Shown: piece after piece, positions 1 to 63,910 of the stretch
How the letters are laid out: every line of letters begins with the position of its first letter
Numbering within the stretch: position 1 is the first letter of the stretch
The notes under the pieces: model-generated
Seen by the model: the letters and a program-made list of their open reading frames with translations, nothing else
The model's database searches: none
Told to the model about the DNA's origin: nothing
NCBI RefSeq assembly: GCF_964204645.1
Contig: NC_134036.1
Coordinates: forward strand, 434,001-498,000
Direction: 5' to 3'
From: Tubulanus polymorphus
Taxonomy: Eukaryota > Animalia > Nemertea
DNA: 64,000 nucleotides
Position numbers and translations under genes: made by a program

Positions 1-354
1 AGCTTATAGAGCACTGAGACTGGAGACTGTCGACACCATTTCTAGAACTGCATGAAGGAACTTGAGTCGACTCAATATCAACTCTGGCCAGTCAGCTTTT
101 CATCTTTTGATCTTAAAATAGGGATTGACCCTGTGATTTATTTGATTGGTAAATTTCGTTTGATTTTTTGATTTGGTGTCCCTTACAAACCCACCACACC
201 TGCCGGGAAAGAAACAGGGGGTTTGATTTTGAAATCGGAAATCGAAGTACAAATATAGTTGTGTGATCGGCGGTCGAGTTCACAGAATTTTTTGTTTAAA
301 TCGAAGTACATAATTTGAAATTTTCGGTTCCGGTTCATTCTAACAATCTTAGCC

Positions 355-1475: not shown

Positions 1476-2120
1476 CTAAACATTTCAGCATTTCATAATT
1501 CCGACGAACGTTTCCCAAATGAAGTCTTTCGTACGCGCCGATTTTCTTCCATTCGGTTTCCGTGAAAAATTCCTCGATCGTCAAATTTTCCACTTCCTCT
1601 AACTTTGCTTTATCGACCCCTGGGAAACCGTCAATCGTCTCTCCCGAACCACTACCGGCGCTACTGATATCGGCGCGCTAAAAAATAATGAGAAAATATA
1701 CTTGTAAAGGGAGAAAAAGATTTACTTCTCACAAACACCAATGTTCCCAGGGTTGCACATATCCTTATGCAAATGTTATTGTTTTATCCAACTGCCTTTC
1801 TTGGGTTTCTTGCCTCGGCCCCCCCAGGGGTTGTTTTGCTCATTTTTTTGGGATGCAATTCTACTCGTTTCTATCATCTATTTTCAGGTTTTTCAATGTT
1901 TACTTTTCTAAGTACACAACGTACATTAATTTGGAAATATCGAGCAGTTCCAAAACGCTCAGAATCCATGAGAAAAGAGACCAATTTTTCTTGAAAACTT
2001 TTTGAGAAGGATCGACTTTTTTACTCCGTTTTTGACCCAATTAATCACAATAAATCACTCTTAATAACAATGAATATGAAACCTGAAACTAAAAATCAAT
2101 CTTACTTCCTCTGTAGACAT
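1476..2120 (-). CDS. 5' end of an ancestral-KRAB-domain gene (PRDM7/PRDM9-like); continues past the left window edge
   Basis: Exon 2106-2120 (AAAATG, MSTEE, then GTAAG) splices to exon 1476-1677 (TTTTTTAG...G|GTAAC), giving MSTEERADISSAGSGSGETIDGFPGVDKAKLEEVENLTIEEFFTETEWKKIGAYERLHLGNVRRNYEMLKCLG. IEEFFTETEWKKIGAYERLHLGNVRRNYEMLKCLG aligns without gaps to the recalled PRDM9 KRAB [35 protein letters not shown] (14/35 identical). No SET or zinc-finger exon lies in the window, so orthology is unproven. Confidence 0.8.
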
Positions 2121-3860
2121 TTTAATCAGACGATTACAAACGATTTCAATTTCAATTCGAGCGTCTGCCAGCGGTTACGCACTCCACAGTAAAGTGTACT
2201 ACTGCGCACGCGCGATGTGTACTATCACCACCACGAATAAACCTATCCTCGCCTGCCGCGGTCTGTGTTACTCGTTGATAGGTTTGCTCCGCACTCCGGG
2301 CTCAGTTTCGACCGGATCAACCTCTCATTTCATAAATCTTCGAACCTAGGCCGATATTCGGGTAGTTTAGAGGATGGCGTCGATGAATTGAAGGTCCAAA
2401 GCAACACCGTGATCCAGTGATTCGTGATCCATTGAAAATTCGGTTGTACCATCGATTGTGCCAGCAGAATAATCAGCCTGTTGGTTGAGGCTGCCGATTT
2501 ACCAGGTTGATGATGATAAAGAGTTCTCGTGCTATCCTTATATCGACTGCGTCGGCTTTCTTTCCGGCTCGCGTAACGGGCATCTTGGTTTCTTGCAAAA
2601 ATTCGGTTCAGATGATTAGATTGAAAATGTTTGCCATATCAAAACAGACATGATTTGAAAAGCAGTGATTGCACTCAAACAATGAGTTTTTCAACACCTC
2701 TACAGCCTCATGTGGATTCAGGCTGCGATTTTGTGCCCGTCACAAGCGTATGGGGCTCTCACCGGTTTGAAATGTTTGATACGACATTTTAAAAACCATG
2801 TCTGCAAATAGCGTTGGGTTTGAAACTATTATGGAATTTCAACTCGCCCTCTAAAGACTGCAGATATCGTGTGCATTTTTTCTAATGAAATATTGAATAG
2901 ACAATAACTATACCGTTTATTTAAAATTCACATTAATTTATTTAACAAATATATCGATTATACATTGAAACGAGATGATAGAATTTAAAGACAGGATAAA
3001 AATGATTGACTCAATAATTTGCGGCATTTTGCTGGAACATAACTTTCCATTCAGAAGTAGGTCCCCAATGAGATATGATTTGATTTTTGCCAATTTAAAC
3101 ATTTACATTTATTAGATTAATCGTCGATTAAATATAGACATATATCGATTACAGTATACGAGAGCGGGGAATATTAATATTTTGAACACAAAATCGACCA
3201 CATTTAGTTGAAAAAACAGTATCGTGTAAAAATATACATTAACAATTAATTTTGACCATTTACACTTTACACAACAATTAACAACATTACGCACAATGTG
3301 TTCACGATCACGTGGGGGAATATTCAAGGTCAGGTACCCGTTAGGTTTAACCGTCGCCATCTTTATTTTCATTTTTTCATCACATTGAAAGTATACATGT
3401 TTACATATACGGATAAATCGTAATCACAATTATAATTAAGATGTAATAATTATATATTTACATAAATCATGTACACATTTTGTTTTTACACAGTTTGTGT
3501 TTTTTCAGTTGAAAATGGCAGTAAAAATAACGATTTATGATAAAATTTAACCAAACATTAAATAATTGTATGCGTTTTGCGTTGCGCAAGCCTAATTTAA
3601 AAAAAAAAAGAATGCCTTGTCCTTAAGGGACCCGCACTGTTTGTTTCATTGTTAAAATTTCTACCCAGTTTTTAGGGTTCAATAAAATGTAAAAATATAA
3701 AACGGGAGATTGTGTGCGTTACTGTGACAACCCGTTACTATGACAACCCATCCCTGAATGTGATAAGACCTGCGCATGTGTGGAGAGGTCTGATGATATG
3801 TTGCCACTGTGAGAAATGGCTGCTTTGTCGCACATATAGGTGTCGCTGTCAGATCTTGTA

Positions 3861-3878
3861 GGCCACTAGATGGCGCTG
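3861..3878 (+). promoter_or_regulatory. CTCF-type binding motif
   Basis: GGCCACTAGATGGCGCTG matches the CTCF core CCASYAGRKGGCRS; it lies 10 nt past the aminopeptidase stop codon. Confidence 0.55.
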
Positions 3879-3887
3879 CTTGTTCAT

Positions 3888-6800
3888 TCATCGTTTATTG
3901 TTTAACTGTAGCCAATCGGAAATAGTTTTGAAGTTATTTTCCATCCATTTAACATTCGATGCCATCAAGGCCAAGGCATTGTTCGCTTCATTGCGGGCTT
4001 TGCCGTCTGGCGGTTGTTTTCGGAATAATTCTTCGACCTGAAATAAAGAATTTATTTCATTGAAAAATTCTAACCTGACTAACGGTTGCTGCTCATCAAA
4101 AGTATACATGAAACACCAATGTAACATTTCTATGTCGATGTATCCAATTTCTGGGTTCAGTTTTTCCAATTGGCTCCACGATGTACTAACCTGATTTTGT
4201 TCATATTTGGTGTTTAATTTTGAGGTACCGTGAGTAACCACGCTCCGCAACACAAAATTATCATTGCGGAATCTACAATTAAAATCATAATCAACAACTT
4301 GAATGAAATAGTAATCTTTTCAAATCTTCGCTCCGAAGATGCTTTGTATTCTTGGAGTGAATTCCAATTGATTCTTTTGATACCTTTCATTTAACTGTTT
4401 CCATTTCGTCAACATAAACATGTAAGCAACATTCTGCCCTAGGGGTGTTGATGACAGGTAACCAAACACCACTCTGATATCCTGTTGTCTTATCTTCTTA
4501 TTATCAAAACACCAATTCGCGTATCTAGACAAATTATCAAAGTTATGACGAATACAAATTTGACAAAATAATGGAATATTTTTGAAGATGCCTTTTACAG
4601 TCCTTGTTCCAAACGAATAGCTGGACTATAGATCTACATCAAGCTTACCTCCACAGTAACCACGGTTCTCTGGTATGCGCCAAAGCCATCATCATCGTTT
4701 CTCTTTCGGACGCTACGTTCGTCGATTGAGACTTATTCCATAGAAAATCCCATTCGTCTGAACTGCCCTGGCTGATACCGGTAGCGTATACTGTCAAAGC
4801 ATAGTCGGGTTCGACTCTGAAATTAAAATCCGACATAAATATCTCAACGACCAGAAGAACATGTTCATCATAGAAATCTGAAATCTGTTCGAAAGGAGCT
4901 ACTTACGGTTTCCCATTTTCCATCCAATCTTTGAAGGCTTTTTGTGCATATTGTACCGCCTCAGGTACTCCCAGACGGCAAGCAGAATCCAATAGAGTTA
5001 TCTTCAAATTTCTACACGAAATTAAAAAAATACTTCGATATAAGTTTCATTAGTCATCACAATGATTTATGAATAAACCTCGCAGAACATAAGAACATGT
5101 TTATGTTACCTTTCAGGGAGGTTCCCCTTAGGACGTCCGGTTCCAACACCCAACCTTCGGAACTGCGGAGCTACCAACCTTCTCATGAATTTCTGAAAAA
5201 AAACATTCATTTATTCATTACTAACAAAACCTCAATCTGAATTATTATTCAAGCATCTATCACCACGGTTCCCTGTACCTTAAATTCGCCATAGATTTCA
5301 CTGCGACAAACCATTCCTTCTATAAACGCTATCGAATTTATAAACGTCTTCCACGGGACGAAATCTTCCTCTTTGTCCAAATATGACGATATGTTCAACG
5401 CGATCTTATAGTCCAATTTACCAGCCCTGGAAAACAATGGTGAAAATAGGCATAGCCGTTTCTGACATTCGGCCCGCAGTTGCTGAAGTTGGTTAAAGAT
5501 AACCAGTGGATGAATACCATAGTAACAATGAACTTTTGATTGTCACTATATCAATTATCCACTGGTTAACTCTAACCAACTTTCCAGCAACTGCAGCCTC
5601 AGCTGGTTTAGAATTGAAGAGTATAATTTTACCTAGCCAGATTGAAGGCATCATTGATGAGACCTGCTCGATTTGCAGATGCAATCACCTAATATGAAAT
5701 ATAGATATTCATTACTTAGCGGATATAAAATGAAACATGTATGTCAGCAGTTTTTAACGCTGAAATTCATACCGTTCTATCACGTTGTAGCTGCTCAATA
5801 AGTTTCTGCCATAGTCCGACATCGTAATTCACTCGGTAGAATCCATTATGATCCCAGTTTCCTACTATCCACGCATTATCAGGCACATAGATTTCACCTA
5901 CAGAAACAAGATACCAGTTCAAGTTTGAATCCAACTCATACGCCAGTCTGGGGCTGCAGTCGCTCAAAGGTTGGTTAAAGATAACCCGTGTATATAGTAA
6001 CTATGAGCTTTTAACTGCCACTATGTCAACCTATCCACTGGTTATACTATGACCAACTTTTCACCAACTGCTGCAGCCTCTGTTGTGTAAAGCTCAGATG
6101 TGTCTTAGGTCAAACCTGAGGTCAAACGTAACCAATGTGTCCTCGGCGTTAGATTGTCTTGTGTTATATATTGAAAAGGAATGAACCATTTGTACCTATG
6201 TAAAAATAATCAATGCATGACTGACAACAACTTTTGGAAAAAGGAAACTATCAGTTGGTTTTATTTGATTGTCTACCAGTCGTTTTGCTTACCCATATGG
6301 ACTGTCAGTTGGATTATAAACCTGGTCAGGGTTCAATAAGAACCTCTCTTGTTCTAGTAGTATTCTGTCATTACCGAGACGTTTAATGGTAATAACCGGG
6401 AATCCCATCTGTCGCGTCCATGTGTCCATGATTTCACCAATATCATATTCCAGATTGGAAACCTATGTAAACAAAGTTGGAAGTGAATGTGACAAACAGG
6501 AAAGATTTTGTCGTCGTTAGTTTAATTAAGAATGTCTCATAAAACGTTGCCTTATTATTTACCTCTTCAAATGCGTGCCAAAGATCTATCATTTCAGCAT
6601 TACGATACATGTATCTATTTACATATTTCTGAAGGCCTCTTTTGAAGTTTTCCCAGCCGAGGAAGCCCCTCAGCATCCTCAAAGTTGCCAGACCCTATAT
6701 CGTTCAAGTATGTAACGGGAGATGTTATGTCTATACTAAAAATTGATAGGTTTATCAAAAAAGTGTTATTGATAGTGGTCACCTTATCGTAGGAGATAGA

Positions 6801-9800
6801 ATCGAAAAACTGCACAATATCATCGGGGTCCTCGATAGGGGCAGAGACCGGATGTGACGTAATCAGCGAGTCTTTCGTCATCACAGCGAATACACTGTCA
6901 ATCAACTGCAGATCGTGCTACAGAAACCAATAGAAACCGTAACAATGATCTTCTTAATGCATGGCATTAGACAAAAGCGGAACATGGATCATTGTCTTAC
7001 CACTTTCCATGACGGGTAGATATAGTCCATAGCGAAATACATTAGTGTACTGGCGAAACCTTCGTTTAACCAAAGGTCCTCCCACCATTTCATCGTAACC
7101 ATGTTCCCGAACCACTATATGAGAAACCAAAATATTGCTGTTTGTTCATTTTTATCTTTTTGTTTCAATTCATAATCAACTTGATTATCTTCCGTTTGTC
7201 TTAAACGTACTTACAGTATGCGCCACCTCGTGGGCAACTACTAAAGTGACGAAGTATTTATTCGACAATGCGGATCGTTCTGGGTCGAATAACAGGGCGG
7301 TCTGGCGGTAGATTATCAAACCCCAATTCTCCATCGCTCCAGCCGCGAAATCCGGAGAGGCGACCTGATCTAACATATAATGCAATCGATAGAACTAATA
7401 ATATATAACAATACTCGTCACGTTTACGACTGTCTGATTGGATATCGTCTAATGATTCAACCTCTCACCTGATTTAGGAACAGTGTCGTTCAATTGGAAA
7501 TAATCCGTAAAAAATTCGTAGCACTTTCTCGAAACGTTCAGAGCGTATCCAGTTTGATTGTAGGCTTCCGGTTGGGCCCAAATACGTATCTGCGAATAAC
7601 GAGACACTATTTTTAAGACCTTCTCTTGAATTCAAGTGCCTAGACCATCGTGTATCAGGTTTCTAACATTACAATGCCTGGGGAACCCCTACAAACTGCT
7701 GTTCTTCTGGCCAGGGACTCGGGGTGTGGCTACTATGAGCTGGTTCAACTATTTTTTTGTTTTTACGGTGGTGACCTTTTCAAACTCATGCATGGTTTGC
7801 CTGGGATACGTAATTTCCTGCTCATGTAACTTACTTTTGGTCCGATTCCACCGGAACCTTCGCGGAAAGTAAAATCCGAAATGACAAATGCAAGTAGATA
7901 TGAAGACATCCTGGGAGTATCGGCAAAATCCGCTTTTATCCAACCATCAGGGAGAGTTGTGTTTCTAATCGAAGGCATATTGGATAATGCCGTGTAACCT
8001 ATCATAGAAAAACAGCATAATCATCAATAATATCATTAGAATAATCATCAGCAGATTTTAGTGTGACTGTGTTAGAGTTTTGTTAGCTAACCCGGTTGGT
8101 GAATCAGTGATATTCCATAAATAGCTTTCATAGCCGGTTCATCGAAACATGGGAATACGCTACGAGCGTCGATGGCCTGCAACTGCGACGCGAGAAGGTA
8201 CCTGAAAAAAATCAGTTGAAAACTAAATTCCAGAATGAGCATTTGTACGGATTATGTGGTCTTTCATTGCTCTCTTGAGTCGTCATGAAAAATTTGTTCA
8301 TGTTGTGTGCTCATTGCTTTTCCGATGTGACAGTCGAATTAGTCTTTCTCGGAAGATCACCACTCCCCTCATTGGCCGAGAAGCCATCACGTCCAGGGTT
8401 GTCTCATCATACAGTCGGTTGTCTGCGTATACGCGCAGTGACAATTAGTCAAATTAATTCTGGTATCATTGTCAGGATTGTGTTGTCCTGAATCAAGGTA
8501 AACGTAACTTTTGTAAAAGGCAGTTTGTCATTCAGAGAGGCAGACAAGGACAGAGAGAAAGGCGGTCCTTGGTGATACGTGAATGTTCGATTTACCAAAC
8601 ACTTGAAACGACTTGTGATAAATAATGATTGATAAAGTAGAAATAGTAAAAGACAAATATCTTTTTGGACAGAGCGGGAGTGGTGCACTGTTGAAAATTT
8701 TGTTTGCTGTTTTGGACAAGAACCCAAGTGACTGCACAATATCCCCGTTCGCCAGTTCGCGCAAATGACTTGAAGACAGTATGAGAAGAGTCTCTGAGAG
8801 AGGCAGTAATTGAGTTTTGTCAATTTGCCGTTTATCAAGGTAATTTGCTGTGTAGAACAGCTCGCTTGTTTCCAGGCGCTGAAGTGCTGCTAATGAGTTT
8901 CGTTGACAACATCTCCCGGCGCCAACAATCGTGAAGGCTTTAGTTTGAAATTCGAACGTAACGACAAAACCAAGTATGCCGCGCACTACCTTATCGAAAC
9001 ATTTAGGGACTGCAATTTTTATTTGCACAAGAAAGTGTCCTACAAATTGAATAATTAATGAAATGATTTGGTTACTTTAGTTGAGAGTATTTACATAAAC
9101 TAGTGACTGTATGGGTTTGAATATAGATTTAATAGGCCTACCTGAAACTTCCATTTACTGGGAACCCGGGCTCTCTCTAAACTCATTAGTGGAAGCCCTT
9201 CAAGTGGTGGTTTAAGAGTATGATGCAAATATTTCATATTCAAATCACTCTCGGCGCATCGAGGCCAAAACATTTTGCTTCCAAAATTAATGATATAAGC
9301 TTACAGATTGAATGAATACTTATGCATTCCAAAAATCTTCAGTTTGAAGATGAACAACATACACAACATTCTTGGCAGGTCCCACTAAAGTGTCGCTTGA
9401 ATTGCTCTATCAAATATTGTTATATCTGTTGCAGTATTCGATGTTTGTCCTGAAAAGTTTAATGACAAATATCTCACACTTTCGTTTCTGTGTCATTTGC
9501 TTGTATTCGATCATAAGTACTGTTACATGCACGGTGTAGTGTGTCGGCAATGTGACAGTTTGACGGAGCACTACCTTTACTCCCACCTTCAAAGCATTTC
9601 AACTCAAATGGCATGATTTTTTTTTCAAAGTGACTTAGCTTCCGTTGTATCTTGGAGTACACCATTTGTTAATGCCGATGCGATCTGTTTTTCTGTGCAT
9701 GGACCCATCATGTTGCAAAAGAGGTAGGCCCAAAGGCACCTCATTTGCAACATGACCACAACAATCCTGGACAACAACTGAATATCCGATATCATTTCAG

Positions 9801-12356
9801 TTCTGTTGTAATTAGAAGGATTTGCAACGTTCAAGCTAAATCACACAATATATTGCCGAAATTCCTTGAATATGAACATTGTTGCCATGTCTGTCTAAAC
9901 ACTACCCTGATTTTGTTGTTTTGGCCCCAAAAGAAAAATATAAACTCCATTTCGTAGGCATGGTTACAATGTTCAAATTCAAGAAATTAAAATGGATCCT
10001 TTCCTAGTCTCTGATTCTACTTAATTGAAGGAGACTCTTTGTAAATCCTTCTAAGTGCAGAACTGGTATAATATTCAGCTATTTTCCGCGATTTTTGGCA
10101 TTCTGTTAAGAACTAAAATGAAACCCAAAAAGTAAGCAAAATAGAATAAAACAAGTCTCGTCCATTTGTAAGGGGCTATAGCTTCAACCGAATGAACTCT
10201 AAGACTCCGTTTCAACGTGGTTTGATTTTGCTACCTTTTCGCTGATAGCGTACTGAGCAATACAGACATTTCCCATACTTCAACCACGCGTAACCCGATA
10301 CTCAGAATAATAGCGTCAAGTGATGCGAGTTACACATCCGGCGTTGACTGAAGTGCCACGGTGATGATTCACAACTACCTCAATATTCTCTACTCATTCC
10401 CCGAGTTTGGCAGAAACTGGGGCGAATGGAACTTGTTCCGCTTGATGAGCACGTAATACAAAACAATATCGACATTGACGAGGATGGGATATAGAATTAA
10501 CAAAGTTAATGTTTTGCCCAGCGAAGAGAACGTGAACTGGCCCCTGGGATGCGAGTGCTCGTAACGGTTGGTTCCGGTAGCGCGCGTAGTGTAATTGAAT
10601 AAACTCTCCGTAGATTCTGCGCACGGGGTAATGATACATTTGTGATAGGCGGTCGACTTTCTATTGATCTTTAAATTACATTTCAAAATTCAAACATATC
10701 AATAACATCCCAGAATTATTAGGTTATCTCTGATCAATGGAAACCGTATCCCTGTATCTGGTATCAGCATTCTAACATAGAGGATCACCTGTACACTGTT
10801 GAATCTGTGGAATTCTGCCCCGAAGATTCTTTGGACAAGTTATGGCTGTGGATCATTGACTTAGGAGAGGTTTTCCCATGTACTGTCTTATATTGTCCAT
10901 CATTGACATTATCTCTTATTTCTTTACTTTCACTTCGTTTTGAAGCGTCCTTCCCAAAAGACAGTGGCAGTGACTTATCTGCCGGTCGTCCAAATACCAG
11001 TTCACAATAAAGGGCAGGACGCATGCATATAATGACACTTATGACATTGTTTCGCGGCTGTTGTCGGCATATTGAACCAGTTTTATATAATGTCTTTATT
11101 GAAAATTGAAAGGTCGTTAATCAAGAATAGATATTGATTGTGTAATTCAACCAATAGCGCTTCTAGAAAAGAAATTCTGATACTCTTCCAACGAAAAGGC
11201 ATCCTTCATGGTAAACTCAGAAAATTCTGGCTAGTACAATGGTACTTGAGGTACTTAGGTACTTAGGTACTTAGGTACAGGTCCGTAGCAGGCCATCTTT
11301 TATTTTAAGGTACCCACGCAAATGTTAGGTTCTGGGAATACTCGTACAGAATGCAAACAGAAGCAATTTCCAAATTTTCTAGAAACATTTGAGGTGAAAA
11401 TTTTGCTTCTTTTTCCTACAATTTTGCCTCAAATCAACTAAGTTTGGAAGCAAATTCTGAACGAAAAACAAACGAAAAAGTTTTACCAATTCTAGTGAAT
11501 CTTCTGAAATCGATGCACAAATTTTCCTAAGACTGGCATAAGAGGAGGAGGTGGCGGTTGGCTTCGTTCTAACCCAACCGAATCCCCCTTACTACGGGCA
11601 ACAATTCCGTCCACAGCGACTTGGACTCACTACACCTTACCTTTTCTGTCCAGTTTTTGTCCGATATGAACTCCTGTAGATCCCCTTTAGATCATCGGTC
11701 ACATTACCGGTAAAGTCGTTCAAAACAATTTCATATTGTTTTCCCTTTTCTAACGCGTCGCGCATACGTATCACGTAGAACTGACGCAGTTTCACCTCGA
11801 GTTGTTCAACGATCGGTAACTGGCGACTGTACCCGACACCGAGGGACTTCACGAACACGCGCGCTGGGTCTATCTTTAATTTCGTCACGTGTACTATAAC
11901 ATATTCCGTATCGGACATACATTCAACCCGTATTGCGACCTTTCCACGAAATTTAAAAGTCGTCAAATCCACTCGTAATTCGATTCTATAGTGGGACGGT
12001 ATGATATTGCCAGGTAAACGAATATTAGCCCAGGGTAGGCTGGGATCTATGGTCGGCTTGACCGGCGCGTATATCGTGATTCTATTTGCCGCGGCCGAAT
12101 CGTCTTTCGTTCCTGAAGGCGGACAGTTATTACGCCCGCCTAGAATACCACCTAATATAATTACAATAAGCACTAAAACGCATATTGTCAATGCAGTGAG
12201 TATAGTTTTCGTACGGGAGAAGTAACAGTAACCGGCGTGTCGCGGGTATCGCGACGTGTTATTATTTCCTATTATTCTCACGTCCCCGTCGATGGATTTG
12301 TGATCGGCGTTGATCGGACATTTCTCGGCCATATTAGAATCGCCCATCTTTTCCAT
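3888..12356 (-). CDS. Membrane-anchored M1 family zinc aminopeptidase (aminopeptidase N-like), 19 coding exons, 984 aa
   Basis: Exons (all GT-AG, phases consistent, total 2955 nt): 11641-12356, 8092-8201, 7835-7998, 7469-7589, 7215-7369, 7001-7114, 6783-6917, 6563-6694, 6293-6462, 6116-6195, 5773-5897, 5633-5688, 5279-5426, 5110-5192, 4907-5011, 4649-4816, 4384-4524, 4191-4272, 3888-4037. Motifs: N-terminal TM anchor ([23 protein letters not shown]), [36 protein letters not shown]-x18-E (WLNEGFA), [23 protein letters not shown]. An acceptor at ~12385 implies an upstream 5'UTR exon. Confidence 0.96.
5471..5598. mobile_element. Palindromic MITE, intronic copy 1
   Basis: Inverted arms gcagttgctg...ttggttaaagataaccagtggat / atccactggttaactctaaccaac...cagcaactgc; sister copy at 5951-6078. 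Confidence 0.75.
5951..6078. mobile_element. Palindromic MITE, intronic copy 2
   Basis: Same family as 5471-5598 (ggctgcag...ggttggttaaagataacc...atccactggtta...ctgcagcc). Confidence 0.72.
8250..11030 (-). pseudogene. Possible decayed nested gene of unknown family in aminopeptidase intron 1
   Basis: Several protein-like minus-strand frames (8528-9028, 9474-9665, 10390-10686, 10785-11024) broken by stops and frameshifts; exon-like ends TACAG|GTGAT (~10788) and TTTCAG|GTAGG (~9141), and an acceptor TTTGTAG (~9040). No family recognised. Confidence 0.3.
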
Positions 12357-38538: not shown

Positions 38539-40225
38539 CCGTAGCGACCAAACAGTCCTCTTTATTATATTGTGTTCTTTCGACCAAGTTTGCATTTTCT
38601 AAAGAGTTTAAACGAACAGAATCTCAAATTGTAAATAATATTATTACAATAATGATAATGATAATTATTGAAATAGTTAAATATTTATTTATTATTGATG
38701 ATTTATTTAAAACTCTTGATTTGTATATATCGAAAATTATAAAATATTATAGTAAAATGTAAATAGGTAATAAAGAATATAGTGTTTAAAACTCAAGGTT
38801 AAATTTAATTAACGATGTTTTTAAAAATGTTCCGTTTGAAATTCTTCAAAAATGTTGTATATGTTTTTTCTAGTTTAAATACTGCGGTGTTTGTGAGGAT
38901 CATAGTTTGGGGTGTTCAGGACTTACAAGGGGGTAGTTTAAGGACTCTAGACTTTAGGACTCGCAAGGAACTTATCTCAAAGCTATCTCAATTATTTGCA
39001 AAGGGATTAATTTCCTTCCCATATTGAAGATTTCGGAGGAATCTTTCCTACACCCTGCGCTCTACGCTTAAGTGTGTTAATCTTTCCCCCTCAGACCTTG
39101 GCATCAGGAGAGGATACATGTACTGCTGTTGTATTGGCACACAGCGCCACCTATTACCTGCTCCTTGCATTAAAGTTGTTTCGATTTTTCGTTAAGTGTG
39201 GGATTGTGGAATGTTGATTAAATGTGAATATTACAAGTGATTCTTTGGAATCTATTGCACTTTCTGGGCGTATGACCCATCCTCTTAGTCTGAGCGGAGG
39301 GACCCTCGTGGATAGCCCGTGCTCCCTGTGGACGGCCCATGTCCCGGAGAGTGCAATATTTTGGTGAAATTTTTGTGAAAAGAATTTAAACTTCGATTGT
39401 TCTGCAGGTTGTCAAGTTTCGTGCCCCTCTACTACTAGAGGGGACAAAATTCAAACTAATTTTTGTGAAATAGAAATTATTTGCATATCTATCGAAGTAT
39501 TTAGATTAGTTAGATATTAGCATATGATAATTAGTAGTAATTAATTGATAAAAATGAGAATCTCCAATCAGTGAATGTATGCGATGATTGACTGTAGAGT
39601 TTCGGTAAGGAGAGGTCTCTGGGGACGTGCGTTTTTCATATAATTGTATCCATATATTAAAAAATGGCACCTTCAAGCGCAACACAGTGGACTCAGTTCC
39701 TGGTCTATCCCTTATTGGGGTCCAAAATGTTGGAGAAATACAATTCAGACTGATAATCCAGATGACATAAGGGGTGGTCAACCGTAAGGAACTGAATTTG
39801 AAAACAGCTGTGATGTGATATGGATGTATTTTATTGTGCAGGGCTTATTTAGAAATTCAACGCATCTGGAATGCTTAAAATGTTAATAAGGCTTTTAGTG
39901 ATTGAAATTCTTGTGCGTCACGTGTAAATTTGTACAAAAAAAACATCATCTGTAAATAAATGAAAATAAAATATTTGAATCTATCATTTAATCATTGAGG
40001 GTTGTTGCATTTTTGCTGTCTTTCATTGGAATCATGATCAGTCGAGAATTCGGTGGTAAAAGAGAAAAGATACAGGAATTGATTTATTCAAAACAGAATT
40101 GGATCTTTTTATCGCATGTTTCATTGAATGGAACAGGACGTTATCCATAACGTCCTAACTCCGTTAATACTTGCAGCTAATGTAAGGGAATATTTCGTGA
40201 TAATTCTACAAAATAAACAGATGAA

Positions 40226-40445
40226 GGCTAAACAAAAATGATACCTTGTTTCTCCGCAGCGGCCGGGTCATTTTTGTGAAATATGATAAAATTTATAAAC
40301 AGTTCATTTCTATAGCGGCCGGGTCTGTTATGGTTAAATTGATCACGATTTAAAAAAAAGTAATGTATAGGGTAGATAGGCGGCCGGCCGGGTCAACATT
40401 TAAGCTCAGCAGAGCGGAGAAACAAGGTATCAATTTTTTTTAGCC
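40226..40445. mobile_element. MITE, sister of 22098-22275
   Basis: ggctaaacaaaaatgataccttgtttctccgc ... gcggagaaacaaggtatcaattttttttagcc. Confidence 0.82.
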
Positions 40446-41535
40446 TAACGTATTCGACACTACGACATCTAGAAGGGCTGGTATAATAGTACGGGACTTA
40501 GTTTGTGCATGACTTACGACAAGCGTGAATAGACTCAATTCAACTGTGGCGTTTAGTGAATTCCCTGAGATAAATGCCCTGCACCCACGATCATTCGACT
40601 ATGACCATGTGAAATCTGAACGCAAATCACGGCGTCAATGCATTACGACATACCAGGGTACGGCTTCTGAATGAAACATGTGATTCCATATACCTTCGAC
40701 AGCCAAATCACCAATAATTTACCACCTAATTTGCCAATCAACCTCCTTACTTTTTTCATACTTTTCCCATTAAATGGGAGAAAGCAAAGCAAATACCGGC
40801 ACGGTACCGTAATATTTAACTAGCCCTGACAGATAACCTCTAATTCTTTCTAACATTATTTGATTGTTTATTTCTTTAGATTGTTTCGCTGCTATCTTTC
40901 AGTGGTCCAACGAGTTGTTGTTTGTGAAATCTAAAATTTAAAAAATAATTTGTATTTCGAATTTTTAAACTACACTTAACTTTGACGTGTAGAAAGTTAT
41001 TTAAAAAAAAATAGAACAATATATCTTTACTGTTCGGATCATTATCATTTAATTAAACTGATCTCGTTCTACCGCTGAAAATGGATCCAATATGGTTTAT
41101 GTCTTAGGGAACCGGTACCACAAGACACAAACGACCTAAACTAAGCAAGATAAATAAACGGTAGGCCTTATGTACAAATACGGGTAAGTATATTAATCGA
41201 TTAGTTTATGTATTCGCCACAGTATTTGGGGGCAGCACTAGACGATTGAGATTTTACTGAGCTGTGGCATGCGAGCAGGAATTCATCCCGCGATCCTTTT
41301 ATCTAACCCTCACAAATAGATATTAATCAATTACCCTGGGTCTTCGTCTTATTTGGTGACCCTCGAATTTGAAATAAAAAATACAACATCGATGAAAACG
41401 GGTTTTCAAGTGACGTGGACTAAAAATAAATTCTATTCAATAAAATATATACATTTGGGTTTGCATTTGATCGTAGACACCGGGCAGAATTTCTCCACAA
41501 TCGTTCAATCGAGTACTAGTCTTTGACACGATCAG

Positions 41536-41877
41536 ATGGCGTTTTCTCGAGCTCTTCAGCTTTTGCTGTGTTTCCTAGCGATCCTGGCGGTTTTATGGCG
41601 CGGTTTATTTCGGAGTGTTGTGGCGCCGGTGAATGGAGTTGTGTGTGCGGTGTGCGCAAGCGGAGTGGATGGAGTTGTGTGCCCGGTGTGTGGAAGTGGA
41701 GTGAATGGAGTGTATATGTGTCGTATGAATGTGGTATTTTTTATATCTTATTTTTTTCTTTATTTTTCATTATTTTTATTTTTAATTTTTTTTTTCATTT
41801 CATTCGTCCCTCACCCCCACCCCCACCCTCTCAATCTCAAGGTTTCAACTGGCAGCGGTGGAGTCGGAGTTCTCTAA
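41536..41877 (+). CDS. Putative 77-aa micropeptide with a hydrophobic N-terminus and two CxxC repeats (exons 41536-41733 and 41842-41877)
   Basis: MAFSRALQLLLCFLAILAVLWRGLFRSVVAP-VNGVVCAVCASG-VDGVVCPVCGSG-VNGVYMCRMNV|VSTGSGGVGVL*. A 108-nt GT..AG candidate intron is almost all pyrimidine. Between the two 36-nt repeats, 3 of 6 differences are synonymous and both Cys are kept. Confidence 0.45.
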   Translation: MAFSRALQLLLCFLAILAVLWRGLFRSVVAPVNGVVCAVCASGVDGVVCPVCGSGVNGVYMCRMNVVFFISYFFLYFSLFLFLIFFFISFVPHPHPHPLNLKVSTGSGGVGVL

Positions 41878-42457
41878 TGTGGCCTTGTCCGAGCTAGTGG
41901 CGGAGTGTTGATGACGCGGATATTACTACGGGGTACCTGCGATCAGAATAAGATGGAGGCGATAGCAATCTTCGACTGTGGGGGCTGTTGGATCTTTAGG
42001 TCCCCAGTCTGGTCCATTCTAGTCTGAATCTGCTGGTTCATTGCCTAAGGCTACCCATTGGCATCTTGCCGATTGGGCTCCCCGTTCACCCAGTTTTTCT
42101 CTGTCATCTGGGTGTCGGTTGTCTTATGTGGTGTGCTCAATTCTCAATTGGGTCCCCAGTTTGGTCCATTCTAGTCTGAATCGGCTGGTTTCTTCGCCTG
42201 AGGCTACCCATTGGCATCTTGCCACTTGGGTTCCCCGTTCACCCAGTTTTTCTCTCTCATCTGGGTGCCGGTTGTCTTTTGGTGTTGATGCTTCAAGATC
42301 GGATAACCCCCAAAGCCGAAGATGTTTGTCGCTTCCCATCTTACTCTGATTGCGGGTCCTCCGTAGTAACACCCGTGTCGTCAGCACCCCGCCGCTAGCT
42401 GGGTCGAGGCCATGTTAGAGAACTCTGACTCTGCCGCTGCTAGTTGGAACCCTGAGA
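41835..42457 (+). ncRNA. Long hairpin RNA candidate (162/163-nt arms, ~300-nt loop)
   Basis: Arms 41835-41996 and 42295-42457 are ~79% identical as an inverted repeat. Of 35 differences, 20 form G.U pairs in the plus transcript, 7 are A.C, 7 are transversion mismatches and 1 is a bulge (~91% paired). Confidence 0.6.
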
Positions 42458-44827
42458 ACTAAGACTTTGCTGTTATCAGCCAGAAGTTCTGTGCTGACTT
42501 CTTTCTCTTTCTCATGCTATATCAAATATGATGTATGCCGTATAAATATGTATTACCAACGTCTATATGGTTGTACTTCAAATTCCGTGAATTGCCGTGA
42601 AACTCTGGAATTAAATTTTTCATCCAAGGTTCTTTCCTCTTCCATCAAAATCTTTCCCAGTTTTTCTTGTCGCAGCAGATGATAAACGTCTATAATGTAT
42701 TCGTAAACTCTGTAATCTCGAACATCTTTTATGTACTTCAAATACATCGTATACTCTGTATCTTCGATTTCTAATTCCCCTTATCCTGGCCTTTCATCTT
42801 TTCCGTCATGTCATCATCTCGTTAATTAATGATTATGTACCATTTAATTTCAGCTTAATTTTATTTAGCCCACTTGGGGCAATAGTGGTAAATCAAGGGT
42901 TAATTTTTACTAATTCCAAAATACAGGGGTTTGATTCTCATAAAAAAGCCTGTTGGTGTTAATTTCTTACTAGCTCTAAGGCAAAAAACTCTCTCATTCC
43001 GTTCTCAAAAAACCTGGCTTATCGTGTGGGGAAGAAGTACATGGTTTGGCTGTATATGTACCTAACCCAGACACGAACGGAGCTGGCATAAATTTGTGGC
43101 ACAATAATAGTTAATACTACTAATGATAGGGATGGTTATGAGATAAAGCTTTCTCAAACCGCAGTGGTCAGGCTCTGTCTGACAAACATCTGGACTTAAT
43201 ATATAATATGCTCTCTTCCCTTTGTCATTTCACAAGCCAGAAGTCAAACTCTGACGGTGAGAAGTCTGGTGATGGCATCATCCAGAATCCGAATCTGGGA
43301 CTGAGTCCGATGGCACCCTTGGACGTTCCAACAACTTCCGAAGACTGTCTGGAAGACACGAAAATTTGGATCAGCTACAACTCATAAACTAAGTAAGATG
43401 AATGGATCCGCTATGGTAAGTTATAATATAAACCGATGCTTCTTTTTAGGTCTGATCACCAAGCGGCAGCAAGTGAAGCGTGACCCAACCAAGTCACGAC
43501 TCTTGTAGTCCGGTGGTCAATCCCATGAAACTACCCTCATCCAGCCCCGCTCCGAGTCCACAGAAAAGTTTTGCGTGGTAATGACCCACACCAAACACAA
43601 GAGTTTCAAAGCTAACATCATCCCAGCTCAAACCCTAGGATCTTCCCCCTTACCAATTCTCCTCTCCTCCCTCCTAATACCAGTAATCTTAATCATGTTA
43701 CTTCCGTCGTCTCTTACTCTTATTCCAGGTCTATCAACACTTCTGATATTCGGCCATCCACATCATTCAATTGAATACCACGTGCGAACACCAGCGATTA
43801 ACCAGACAGCTCAACGCACTCACTCCAGATCAACCATGTTCAACCAATACCACAGATCAGCAACCACTCCCAGTAAGTATAAGTAAGAACTAAGGGTCCA
43901 TTATCTATTGGTAAGTTAACTGACGCTTCAATTTCTAGATCTGATCATCAACAAGTTAAGCTGGCAACAAATGAAGTTTGGTTCGACTCGCTAATGGCTT
44001 TTGGAGCTTGGTCGTGAAAATACGATCATCTGGTCACGCACATATGAGGTTACCACCATCACTGCCTCTAAGCGTCAGGCATCATCGTTGCTGCTCAACT
44101 ACTTGGAGCCACCCTCCCTGTGCCCCTCTCCTCCCTTTAATACCGGTTTATCATCTTCTTCATGATACTGTGTCTAATTCTTCTTATTACAGGTTTACAC
44201 GGAGAAATCCATTAATCCAATGCCGAGGTACAACGAGACGCTACACGCAAAGATGTCACATGCGTCTGAGAGAATCTGACCAACAAACAATCAACAGATT
44301 CAACAGGTTATTTAATCTATTTTGAACTTTTATGGGATTAAAGGCTTTGTCCTAGTTTTCAATTTTGAAGGAGATTTTAAAAGGGAAATGAATACGAAAA
44401 TTCTGTACCTTTCGATCAATTCTCAGTTTTCTGAATTTCTGAAATTCCTGAATTTGGAAGGGGAAATATTCCAATTTCATTGTGTATTTTGAAGTGAGAG
44501 CCTTATTCTGATAAGACATCCTAACTGAGGTCTTATTCCTCTAGCTAATAGCTAACCTCTCCTTCAAACTATTACTACTACAGACTACCGGTCTAATTTG
44601 GCACGGTCTAAAAGAGCGAACCAGGTCCTTTCCAAATTTTGGACTGGTCTAAATCTATGTGTGTGGATAGAAACTGGTACCAGGTCCGGTCTAAATTGTG
44701 ATTCTGAATCTGCTTTAAGTAATGATGTCTTTTTTTACTAGTTTCAGCTATACTTCATCGAGGAGACAGTAGCGATTTATAAGCCAACCATGAATTACTT
44801 CAAGGGATGGATTTCTACATGGATTCA

Positions 44828-44950
44828 GGAGACAATAGTGGATTCTATAAACAATGATTCAGGAGCGGCAGAGACAATAGTGGATTCTATAAACAATGAT
44901 TCAGGAGCGGCAGAGACAATAGTGGATTCTATAAACACTGATTCAGGAGC
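44828..44950. repeat. 42-bp tandem repeat (3 copies)
   Basis: gagacaatagtggattctataaacaatgattcaggagcggca repeated. Confidence 0.9.
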
Positions 44951-45134
44951 TGCGGTAACTTTATAGCGCTATTTTCTAAAGGGGCCCCAATTTTTTTTTT
45001 CAAATATAACTCAATGCGTGTATAATCAAATGAATTTTTGATATAATGTTTAGAAATTAAATTAATAATGTATTTAGTAAGTGAGTCTAATAATTCATTC
45101 ATTCTTAGATCAATCTCCTCCAAGTATGCCAACA

Positions 45135-45545
45135 CGAGATCTTTTCTGTTGTTATTTTAAAGCATTCTATCAACTCGGTTAACAATAAACAAAACAAACA
45201 AATAACCATAAACCAAAACTGAATTAAACACACTCAAAAAATAACCGATACGATAGAATGCTTTAAAGAACTGATGAAAGATCAAGCGTCCATTGGAATT
45301 ACCCGCCCGCCTATAAAATTTCTATGAATAGTGTTGAGGAGGATCCGTCTGAACCTGACGGTTTGTAACCTTCTCCAAGCAGCCAACAATTTGAGATCTT
45401 TTCTGTTGTTATTTTGAAGCAGTCTATATCAGCTCAGTTAGCTATAAACAAAACAAACAAATAACCATAAACCTAAACTAAATCAAACACACTTAAACGC
45501 TAACTGATAGGATAGAATGCTTTGAATAACTGATGAAAGATCAAG
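45135..45545. repeat. Duplicated ~150-bp palindromic MITE-like unit
   Basis: gatcttttctgttgttattttaaagcattctatc ... gatagaatgctttaaagaactgatgaaagatc at ~45135-45285 and ~45393-45545. Confidence 0.8.
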
Positions 45546-45700
45546 CTTTCTTTGAAATAGTGCCCACCCATTCACTTACTGTAAGTGAATAATATCGTTT
45601 TATGAATGAAAAAGACTTAAGACTTACTAAGGGACCATTCATTAAGGTTGAACATTTTTTTAAGGTTCTAATTAAATGAACGGTCTCCTACTATGTGACT

Positions 45701-54820: not shown

Positions 54821-63910
<9,090 letters not shown>

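Follow-up and report, generated by a model that had tools for sequence, protein, structure and literature searches.

The window, i.e. the whole stretch of 64,000 nucleotides of Tubulanus polymorphus DNA that was analysed, carries in close succession a short hydrophobic ORF, a long hairpin, an ORF on the opposite strand and a duplicated module, and the question raised by this locus is whether these four parts form a new gene cassette or belong to something that occurs elsewhere in the genome. A sequence-only reading had offered two interpretations, namely a self-regulating selfish or defence cassette, or a remnant, itself non-autonomous, of some unknown mobile or viral element. According to our analysis, ~40147-45576 is an old copy, 5'-truncated and internally deleted, of a non-coding interspersed repeat unit of ~12.7 kb. 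The reading that the region is what remains of one copy of a dispersed, non-coding repeat, and that its hairpin is a trait of the family and not a device specific to this locus, is given a probability of about 0.75.

Genome matches of window segments revealed that repeat DNA spans ~40147-43338 and then continues in patches as far as 45576 (Table 1). Colinearity with full units is preserved in the window copy, yet about half of the unit is missing from it. Directly after the segment 40474-40748, ~715 bp are deleted in comparison to full copies, and neither the canonical 5'-terminus motif nor the 3'-terminus motif of the unit has a match in the window. Within the core lie the hairpin and the T-rich stretch as well as the ATG ORF with its minisatellite and the region where the antisense ORF is located, and the last segment (45098-45576) occurs twice, as a 259-bp local duplication. 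When 13 copies, the one in the window included, were compared over their full length, the window copy was the most diverged of all, and its distance to the family consensus was ~2x that of the other copies, amounting to 8.2% in the flanks and to 4.7% in the hairpin. The MITE at 40224-40448, for which 40 scored places out of the candidates showed 97-99% identity, is a later insertion that disrupts the old repeat copy. A search of 41810-45600 against Rfam at E ≤ 1 gave no match, and nothing indicates a host function at the window locus. Four sequencing runs contain the stretch, with shares of 0.53-0.11, which fits low-coverage DNA.

Table 1. Positions of repeat segments, hairpin parts, ORFs and other features in the window.
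Feature	Position	Strand	Remarks
First recognisable repeat piece, ~unit position 840-926	40147..40229	+	76-82% identity to copies c4bp and c11p
Young 225-bp MITE with ~33-bp terminal inverted repeats	40224..40448		2425 candidate places
Repeat-family segment, ~unit position 794-1038	40474..40748	+	
Core of repeat copy	40802..43338	+	colinear with unit position 1753-4288
ATG ORF, 113 aa, hydrophobic, CxxC-containing	41536..41877	+	
T-rich stretch	41746..41802	+	within the putative intron of the sequence-only reading
Hairpin 5' arm	41829..42001	+	RNA fold and inverted-repeat search
Hairpin loop, 153-bp x1.9 tandem repeat	41999..42285	+	
Hairpin 3' arm	42290..42464	+	RNA fold and inverted-repeat search
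Antisense ORF, 64 aa ('convergent orphan ORF')	42553..42747	-	no Pfam match
1.1 kb specific to this locus, within the unit's variable region	43339..44443	+	
Repeat-family segment, ~unit position 4613-4754	44444..44572	+	
42-bp x2.9 minisatellite	44829..44954	+	matches the 41/42-bp array of the unit, ~position 8845-8950
Repeat-family segment, ~unit position 10543-10728	45098..45576	+	last clear homology to the unit

Copies, ends and content of the repeat family

The genome search for paralogous cassettes and shared boundaries was productive on both counts. At least 20 other copies, located on 11 further chromosome-scale contigs (C1-C11), show the same succession of ATG ORF, T-rich stretch, hairpin and a further ~900 bp. 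Full-length matches to the hairpin, at least 20 in number and 86-94% identical, were obtained on C1-C11, and the part upstream of the hairpin was present at the same loci. More diverged hairpin copies lie at C9:11358630, C2:26928295, C9:13253029 and C1:8694664. Instead of occurring as independent, unrelated repeats, the first three of the four parts recur together as one repeat.

The unit has a length of 12-13 kb, roughly 12.7 kb, with the hairpin module situated ~2.7 kb from the 5' end. Sharp ends were found on both sides: the 5' terminus, TATGGAAGCC..., is identical in 6 copies bearing 5 different flanks, and a common 3' end is located 20-45 nt past an AATAAA, in the hairpin-bearing subfamily as well as in the wider family. 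The ~20-22 hairpin-bearing units form one subfamily within a larger family, for which several hundred candidate places exist. For the 3' end of the unit, for its middle and for an 80-bp 5' piece, at least 256-277 candidate places were counted, and the hairpin together with the 5' part was encountered at ~22-30 places, far below the counts for 3' end and middle. 5'-truncated variants start at various points, examples being c6ap and c9m (from unit position 173) as well as the window copy. Several loci are made up of head-to-tail pairs with a conserved spacer of ~270 bp, in which the second unit begins at position 173, and local tandem pairs are found on C3, C5 and C8.

The unit is rich in minisatellites and tandem modules and shows no protein-coding capacity. 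Inside 12 units, no ORF of more than 140 aa was found, and in tblastx comparisons all frames scored alike, no coding frame being singled out. Similarly, one full unit had no match in Rfam at the gathering score, nor in a tRNA scan. At none of the three 3' ends read was there a poly(A) or simple-repeat tail, and in the one copy with both ends available the search for a target-site duplication gave an ambiguous 4-7-bp match. A pattern search for two predicted junctions, in which an exact match was required, found none at the expected places. The literature on nemertean genomes and repeats yielded nothing useful.

Several classes of elements were rejected on the basis of the unit ends. In the case of LTR retrotransposons and TIR DNA transposons, terminal direct or inverted repeats were lacking in 3 copies, the 3'-terminal 330 bp matching nothing close to the 5' end in either orientation, and in the case of Helitrons, the unit termini were TATGGAAG... 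and ...TAAAC or ...GTTTAG in place of the 5'-TC and 3'-CTRR that, along with a sub-terminal hairpin, mark such elements. The earlier statement that no transposase, RT, TIR or LTR is evident is in agreement with our ORF, Pfam and end-to-end searches. Also, with at least 20 dispersed colinear copies, sharp common ends and no coding capacity, the proposal that the locus is the non-autonomous remainder of an unknown mobile element is supported.

The long hairpin

The long RNA hairpin noticed previously is real, yet it came with the repeat family and was not built at the window locus. An inverted-repeat finder delimited the arms as 41835-41956 and 42336-42457, and in the fold of the window + strand 154 positions are paired, made up of 132 Watson-Crick and 22 G:U pairs. 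The minimum free energy of the + strand amounts to -362.6 kcal/mol (z = -18.8), which is better by 58 kcal/mol than the -304.2 kcal/mol determined for the - strand, and RNAalifold recovered the same stem independently.

As DNA, the hairpin arms are only ~80% identical. On the + strand of the family consensus the stem consists of 132 Watson-Crick pairs, 20 G:U pairs and no A:C (two-sided binomial p about 2e-6 for G:U versus A:C) and, therefore, the RNA form of the hairpin had been shaped in the ancestor of the family. When copies were considered one by one, 17-26 G:U were counted versus 0-7 A:C on this strand, and the AATAAA near the 3' end of the unit is located on the same strand (+) as the G:U-rich reading of the stem. 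The mismatch pattern shows apparent selection on the RNA duplex while the arms diverged freely as DNA. ADAR-type editing as a source of the G:U bias found no support among the post-dispersal changes, in which A>G (9) was not above T>C (7), and 21 C>T together with 22 G>A changes made up most of the total. The hairpin as a stand-alone MITE was discarded since the genome contains no copy of the 640-bp fold-back that lacks family flanks.

An alternative that we judge unlikely is that the units constitute a host multi-copy family of genes for long non-coding hairpin RNAs (endo-siRNA precursors), spread by duplication and each equipped with a promoter and a poly(A) signal of its own; the window copy would then be a family member in decay or one that has diverged. 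The layout is indeed gene-like, with a defined start, a terminal AATAAA and a + strand stem of ~150 bp in which G:U is the only deviation, and the local tandem pairs also speak for such a family. In addition, hairpin plus loop are best conserved, showing 95-98% pairwise identity, with the loop (97-98%) as the best-conserved part of the family. However, identical ends, unrelated flanks and a distribution over many chromosomes are better explained by transposition than by segmental duplication, and divergence in the hairpin is not consistently lower than in the flanks. When the arms were compared to the genome, all matches were copies of their own family and, thus, there is no separate gene that could be their target. 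Also, post-dispersal breaks of the stem are about as frequent as changes that preserve pairing: 30 changes from Watson-Crick to G:U were counted versus 17 from Watson-Crick to A:C (p about 0.08), besides 23 breaks by transversion and no more than 2 compensatory pairs.

ORFs and duplicated modules

The overlap of CAGATGGCG (41533-41541) with an ATG at 41536 was confirmed, and the ORF that had been described as a hydrophobic CxxC micropeptide is present. However, it appears to have no coding signature. It contains a 36-bp GT-rich minisatellite (41629-41711), and the number of 21/36-bp units differs between copies. The possibility that a family of small cysteine-rich peptides, secreted or membrane-located, has this ORF as its first exon, with the hairpin acting as an intronic or 3' regulatory element, seems very unlikely to us. 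Its N-terminus is hydrophobic and signal-like, the ATG is conserved in 13/13 copies, and in 10/13 copies the 21- and 36-bp units vary in frame, the frame being kept through ...CRMNV. In contrast, the frame is lost in the other 3/13, the reading frame of the C-terminal part changes from copy to copy, and DNA conservation just upstream of the ATG equals that within the ORF region. Furthermore, a second frame is likewise open over the GT-rich stretch, and the openness of these frames is due to the A-poor composition. When six ORFs of the region were compared to Pfam, only sub-threshold matches were obtained, for example RING-like ones to the CxxC pairs, and for the first 70 aa of the ATG ORF a word-index search, which covers proteins of 38-122 aa only, found no relative in this size range in a collection of 5.8 billion clusters.

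The 64-aa ORF on the - strand, previously called a convergent orphan ORF, exists and does not overlap with the ATG ORF, but frameshifts and stops break it in 12/12 other copies; it is a chance ORF, limited to the window copy. Similarly, the duplicated module withstood scrutiny as a duplication but not as a part of a recurring cassette. Of the locus-specific 1.1 kb, just the first ~190 bp are common to 2 other copies, and within this region two diverged tandem modules of ~490 bp (43385-43874 and 43875-44335) share 71% identity (z = 10.7 versus shuffles). This module duplication is real and old, but unique to the window locus. The best-kept islands of the modules resemble splice sites. GT-rich composition, chance and local duplication have, we infer, given rise to the ATG ORF, the antisense ORF and the modules as side products.

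The cassette as first proposed, a type I toxin-antitoxin-like arrangement in which a hairpin RNA would hold a toxic, hydrophobic micropeptide in check in the company of a convergent ORF and spliced modules, can practically be dismissed, for the only point in its favour is the co-occurrence of a hydrophobic ORF with a structured RNA, whereas two of its four parts are already contradicted (the convergent ORF is not conserved and the modules are confined to the window copy), neither a coding signature nor an antisense partner is apparent, a separate hairpin target is lacking, and the entire arrangement is repeat DNA in the most decayed of 13 copies.

Proposed origin and comparison with known systems

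Returning to the relic copy of a dispersed repeat, we propose that the unit belongs, or once belonged, to the non-autonomous mobile elements and would be copied via a Pol II-type transcript of the + strand, with the enzymes for copying supplied by another element. The hairpin may serve as a cis-acting structure of the unit RNA in stability, recognition or processing, and it would be selected in master copies while inserted copies decay close to neutrally. For the unit, a retro-type route is given somewhat less than even odds, the remainder going to an unknown or a DNA-level route. The absence of a tail and of a confirmed target-site duplication counts against this proposal. No autonomous partner of the unit is apparent, and among non-autonomous retroposons a length of 12.7 kb would be exceptional. 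Head-to-tail pairs with a spacer could alternatively be due to a rolling-circle, a circular-intermediate or a DNA-level duplication route, and the abundance gradient along the unit could reflect module exchange between subfamilies as an alternative to 5' truncation.

A more far-reaching proposal, which we regard as speculative and rather improbable, is that the ~12.7-kb unit and its several-hundred-member family represent an undescribed type of non-coding mobile element, whose transcript carries a selected, G:U-buffered hairpin of ~150 bp and of which the window copy is a relic. In such an element the hairpin might be a cis signal for a foreign enzyme, or the element might be a mobile hairpin-RNA gene feeding RNAi, and head-to-tail pairing via the conserved spacer might be part of its propagation.

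The window locus is to be viewed as repeat debris and not as a new gene cassette, and the same reading is advised for like patterns elsewhere in this genome. What remains of interest is the family itself, a large, unclassified, non-coding and mobile-looking unit. Given RNA data, it would offer a clean test between hairpins that transposable elements use for their own copying and mobile hairpin-RNA genes.

When compared to known systems, the window copy resembles type I toxin-antitoxin loci in having a small hydrophobic ORF beside a structured RNA. However, those systems are bacterial and rely on base pairing between the toxin mRNA and an antisense RNA, whereas the window copy, which apparently has neither an antisense partner nor a coding signature, stands in the context of an animal repeat. 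With Penelope-like elements the unit shares 5' truncation and head-to-tail partial tandems, but it has no RT or GIY-YIG ORF, and the full unit that was searched contains no hammerhead ribozyme and no Rfam match of any kind. Foldback elements and MITEs may also have inverted repeats of more than 100 bp around tandem sub-repeats, as the unit does; in contrast to them, the inverted repeat of the unit is internal, well inside the 5' end, and is flanked on both sides by kilobases of homology in every copy. Animal hpRNA/endo-siRNA genes have been described in Drosophila. The unit is similar to them in its long inverted repeat, the arms of which pair almost perfectly as RNA on one strand only, most mismatches being G:U, but differs in that its hairpin is found in ~20 dispersed copies of a mobile-looking repeat and that no homology to a distinct target gene was found. 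Composite retrotransposons of the SVA/LINE-dependent type have a length of 1-3 kb instead of 12.7 kb, and the unit differs from them by its long internal hairpin, by the lack of a poly(A) or microsatellite tail and of a confirmed target-site duplication, and by the lack of a recognisable SINE or LINE piece or partner. Like them, the unit is non-coding and modular with tandem repeats in variable number, it is gene-like with an AATAAA near a fixed 3' end, and it occurs in 5'-truncated copies, 3' parts being far commoner than 5' parts.

A relic of a dispersed repeat and its hairpin

The window holds a relic of a discrete non-coding unit which has common ends, is dispersed and locally paired, and bears a hairpin selected at the RNA level. 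When the + strand RNA was folded, 154 positions were paired, 41829-42001 with 42290-42464 (132 Watson-Crick and 22 G:U pairs), with a minimum free energy of -362.6 kcal/mol as compared to -216 kcal/mol for shuffled sequences (z = -18.8), and the fold of the - strand was weaker (only -304.2 kcal/mol). Therefore, the long, wobble-rich hairpin that had been proposed in the sequence-only reading is real, strand-specific and far beyond chance.

A search of the 268-Mb assembly with the 651 bases around the hairpin revealed at least 20 full-length matches of 86-94% identity on the other chromosome-scale contigs C1-C11, and the 1.4 kb upstream of the hairpin region were also present at those loci. When mapped against 12 of the matching places, taken as 20-kb stretches (41746-41802 being masked in the later BLAST queries), the window was homologous at 40147-40229, 40474-40748, 40802-43338, 44444-44572, 44846-44953 and 45098-45576, and the order of these segments was constant among the loci compared. 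This constancy indicates that an ATG-initiated ORF, a T-rich stretch, the hairpin and the region of an antisense ORF belong to a single block of one repeat. These parts of the proposed cassette do recur together, but its duplicated module does not, as 43339-44443 is nearly unique to the window locus and falls where copies vary most in length. The duplication itself (43385-44335; 71% identity, z = 10.7) is genuine and specific to this locus. The best-preserved islands in it look like splice sites, both donors and acceptors; that the modules are spliced, as had been suggested, would be a guess.

Features of the window and, by contig, of the repeat unit elsewhere
Feature	Position	Strand	Remark
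Short dispersed repeat	105-350		76-80% identical to sites in or near several 20-kb repeat loci, both orientations
MITE, 225 bp	40224-40448		~33-bp terminal inverted repeats
ATG ORF, hydrophobic, CxxC pairs	41536-41877	+	spans minisatellite
GT-rich minisatellite inside ATG ORF	41629-41711		36-bp x2.3
Inverted repeat arms	41835-41956 and 42336-42457
Tandem repeat forming the inverted-repeat loop	41999-42285		153-bp x1.9
Antisense ORF	42553-42747	-	64 aa
259-bp local duplication of family segment	45136-45284 and 45393-45543		26-bp inverted repeat in each copy (45156-45181 / 45242-45267)
Long GA/CT-rich simple repeat	55576-56163		open on both strands, giving artefactual ORFs (174-195 aa)
63-bp-unit tandem array	62285-63548		open in one frame (21-aa repeat, SGVYCTIQLRYRSQVKRSDL...); either coding repeat or minisatellite
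Head-to-tail unit pairs	C8:13411377-13439401, C5:22718283-22732072, C3:7295801-7318400, also C10:12455673, C4:5019953, C11:9229021
Satellite-like arrays of unit middle pieces (~200 bp, ~140 bp)	C8:12884889-12890812, C10:12047214-12047896		long tandem amplification

The start motif CAGATGGCG overlaps the ATG at 41536 as described, and both the hydrophobic ORF that had been read as a micropeptide and the T- and C-rich stretch after it (the pyrimidine-rich part of a claimed intron) were found. All 13 copies compared keep the ATG, and 10 of them keep the frame to ...CRMNV despite a varying number of 21- and 36-bp units, with a frame shift in the other three. A second frame is open across the same A-poor stretch, DNA conservation just upstream of the ATG equals that of the ORF, and downstream of the T-rich stretch the reading frame differs among copies. 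Pfam searches gave only sub-threshold matches, and a word-index search covering proteins of 38-122 aa found no relative. We take the ATG ORF as a by-product of composition and consider its translation into something functional very improbable. The convergent ORF exists in the window, but in each of the other 12 copies frameshifts and stops interrupt it; the stretch downstream of this ORF lacks long ORFs, as had been stated.

Selection and decay of the stem

RNAalifold recovered the same stem from the 13 copies without reference to the window fold (consensus energy -345 kcal/mol), and the consensus stem contains 132 Watson-Crick pairs, 20 G:U, no A:C and 2 other mismatches. Without selection, transitions at paired sites yield G:U or A:C equally often. 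The probability of 20 versus 0 is about 2e-6. Hence, prior to the separation of the copies, either selection acted on the + strand RNA duplex or a strongly one-sided process produced it. After separation, Watson-Crick pairs turned into G:U 30 times and into A:C 17 times, transversions broke pairs 23 times, and G:U returned to Watson-Crick 11 times; only 2 pairs changed on both sides. The G:U bias is weak (p about 0.08) and copies mostly decay. The window copy, scored against the consensus structure, is similar to its relatives (124 Watson-Crick, 20 G:U, 3 A:C and 2 other among 149 pairs). Hairpin divergence is below flank divergence in some copies, not in all. Among the substitutions that arose after dispersal, A>G (9) is not overrepresented relative to T>C (7), so that a recent ADAR-like footprint is absent.

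The full unit and the state of the window copy

Both unit ends are visible in copy c1bp (retrieved stretches L017, 6093, to L031, about 8826), and from one to the other the unit measures about 12.7 kb. Six copies, with five different flanks between them, share the same 5' end (TATGGAAGCC...). The hairpin-bearing units end sharply 20-45 nt past an AATAAA; the 3' end of the wider family is also sharp, some 17 nt earlier. Candidate genome places number 256-277 for each of three pieces (the 3'-terminal 320 bp, 3 kb from the middle and 80 bp near the 5' end), as compared to about 22-30 for the hairpin plus flanks; hairpin-bearing units are therefore a subfamily within a larger family. None of 12 units contains an ORF over 140 aa, tblastx between diverged units scored alike in all six frames, and searches of the repeat sequence matched no Rfam family or tRNA. 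Neither TIR nor LTR was found in the unit, in line with the sequence-only reading, and a poly(A) tail was absent at all three 3' ends read. Tandem arrays with periods of 36, 153, 70, 282 and 41/42 bp occur in the unit, and other family members have 140- and 200-bp arrays.

Later starts are seen in copy c6ap, in the window copy and in copy c9m, which begins at unit position 173. At no fewer than five loci a conserved spacer of ~270 bp separates one unit from the next, which begins at position 173; the spacer also sits before c9m and after c1bp. Copies c11m and c4ap, on different chromosomes, have a common flank beyond the 5' end (97% over >500 bp), either by segmental duplication or because both lie inside one other repeat.

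Neither unit terminus was found in the window copy; about 715 bp are missing downstream of 40748, as is most of the unit's stretch from position 4750 to 10540. The window copy differs from the consensus by 8.2% in flanking sequence and by 4.7% within the hairpin, about twice the distance of the other twelve copies; these counts leave out 41746-41802, which were present in the underlying MAFFT alignment, used also for both ORF comparisons. Among the copies compared, the window copy is the most damaged and the oldest. Inside it lies a MITE with 2425 candidate genome places; the 97-99% identity of the 40 scored marks it as a very young and probably active DNA-transposon derivative.

Spread of the unit and comparison with known elements

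We propose that the unit would be a non-autonomous element, spread via a + strand transcript copied by the enzymes of another element, a tentative reading to which we assign a probability of about 0.4. The AATAAA-defined end, the 5' truncations and the greater abundance of 3' than of 5' parts speak for this retro route; also, the AATAAA is on the strand of the hairpin's G:U bias, consistent with a + strand transcript. Counted against it are the unit's unusual length together with the lack of a tail, of a confirmed target-site duplication and of a partner element; tandem pairs linked by the spacer might point to some other route. The hairpin would most likely act in cis on the element's own RNA; the main alternative is a source of small RNAs. 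The family is unclassified. Where defining features of LTR, TIR, Helitron, Penelope-like and Foldback/MITE elements and of poly(A)-type retroposons were tested, the unit fails them. In behaviour, its closest analogue is found among composite non-autonomous retroposons such as SVA, and in hairpin anatomy the unit is like animal hpRNA genes.
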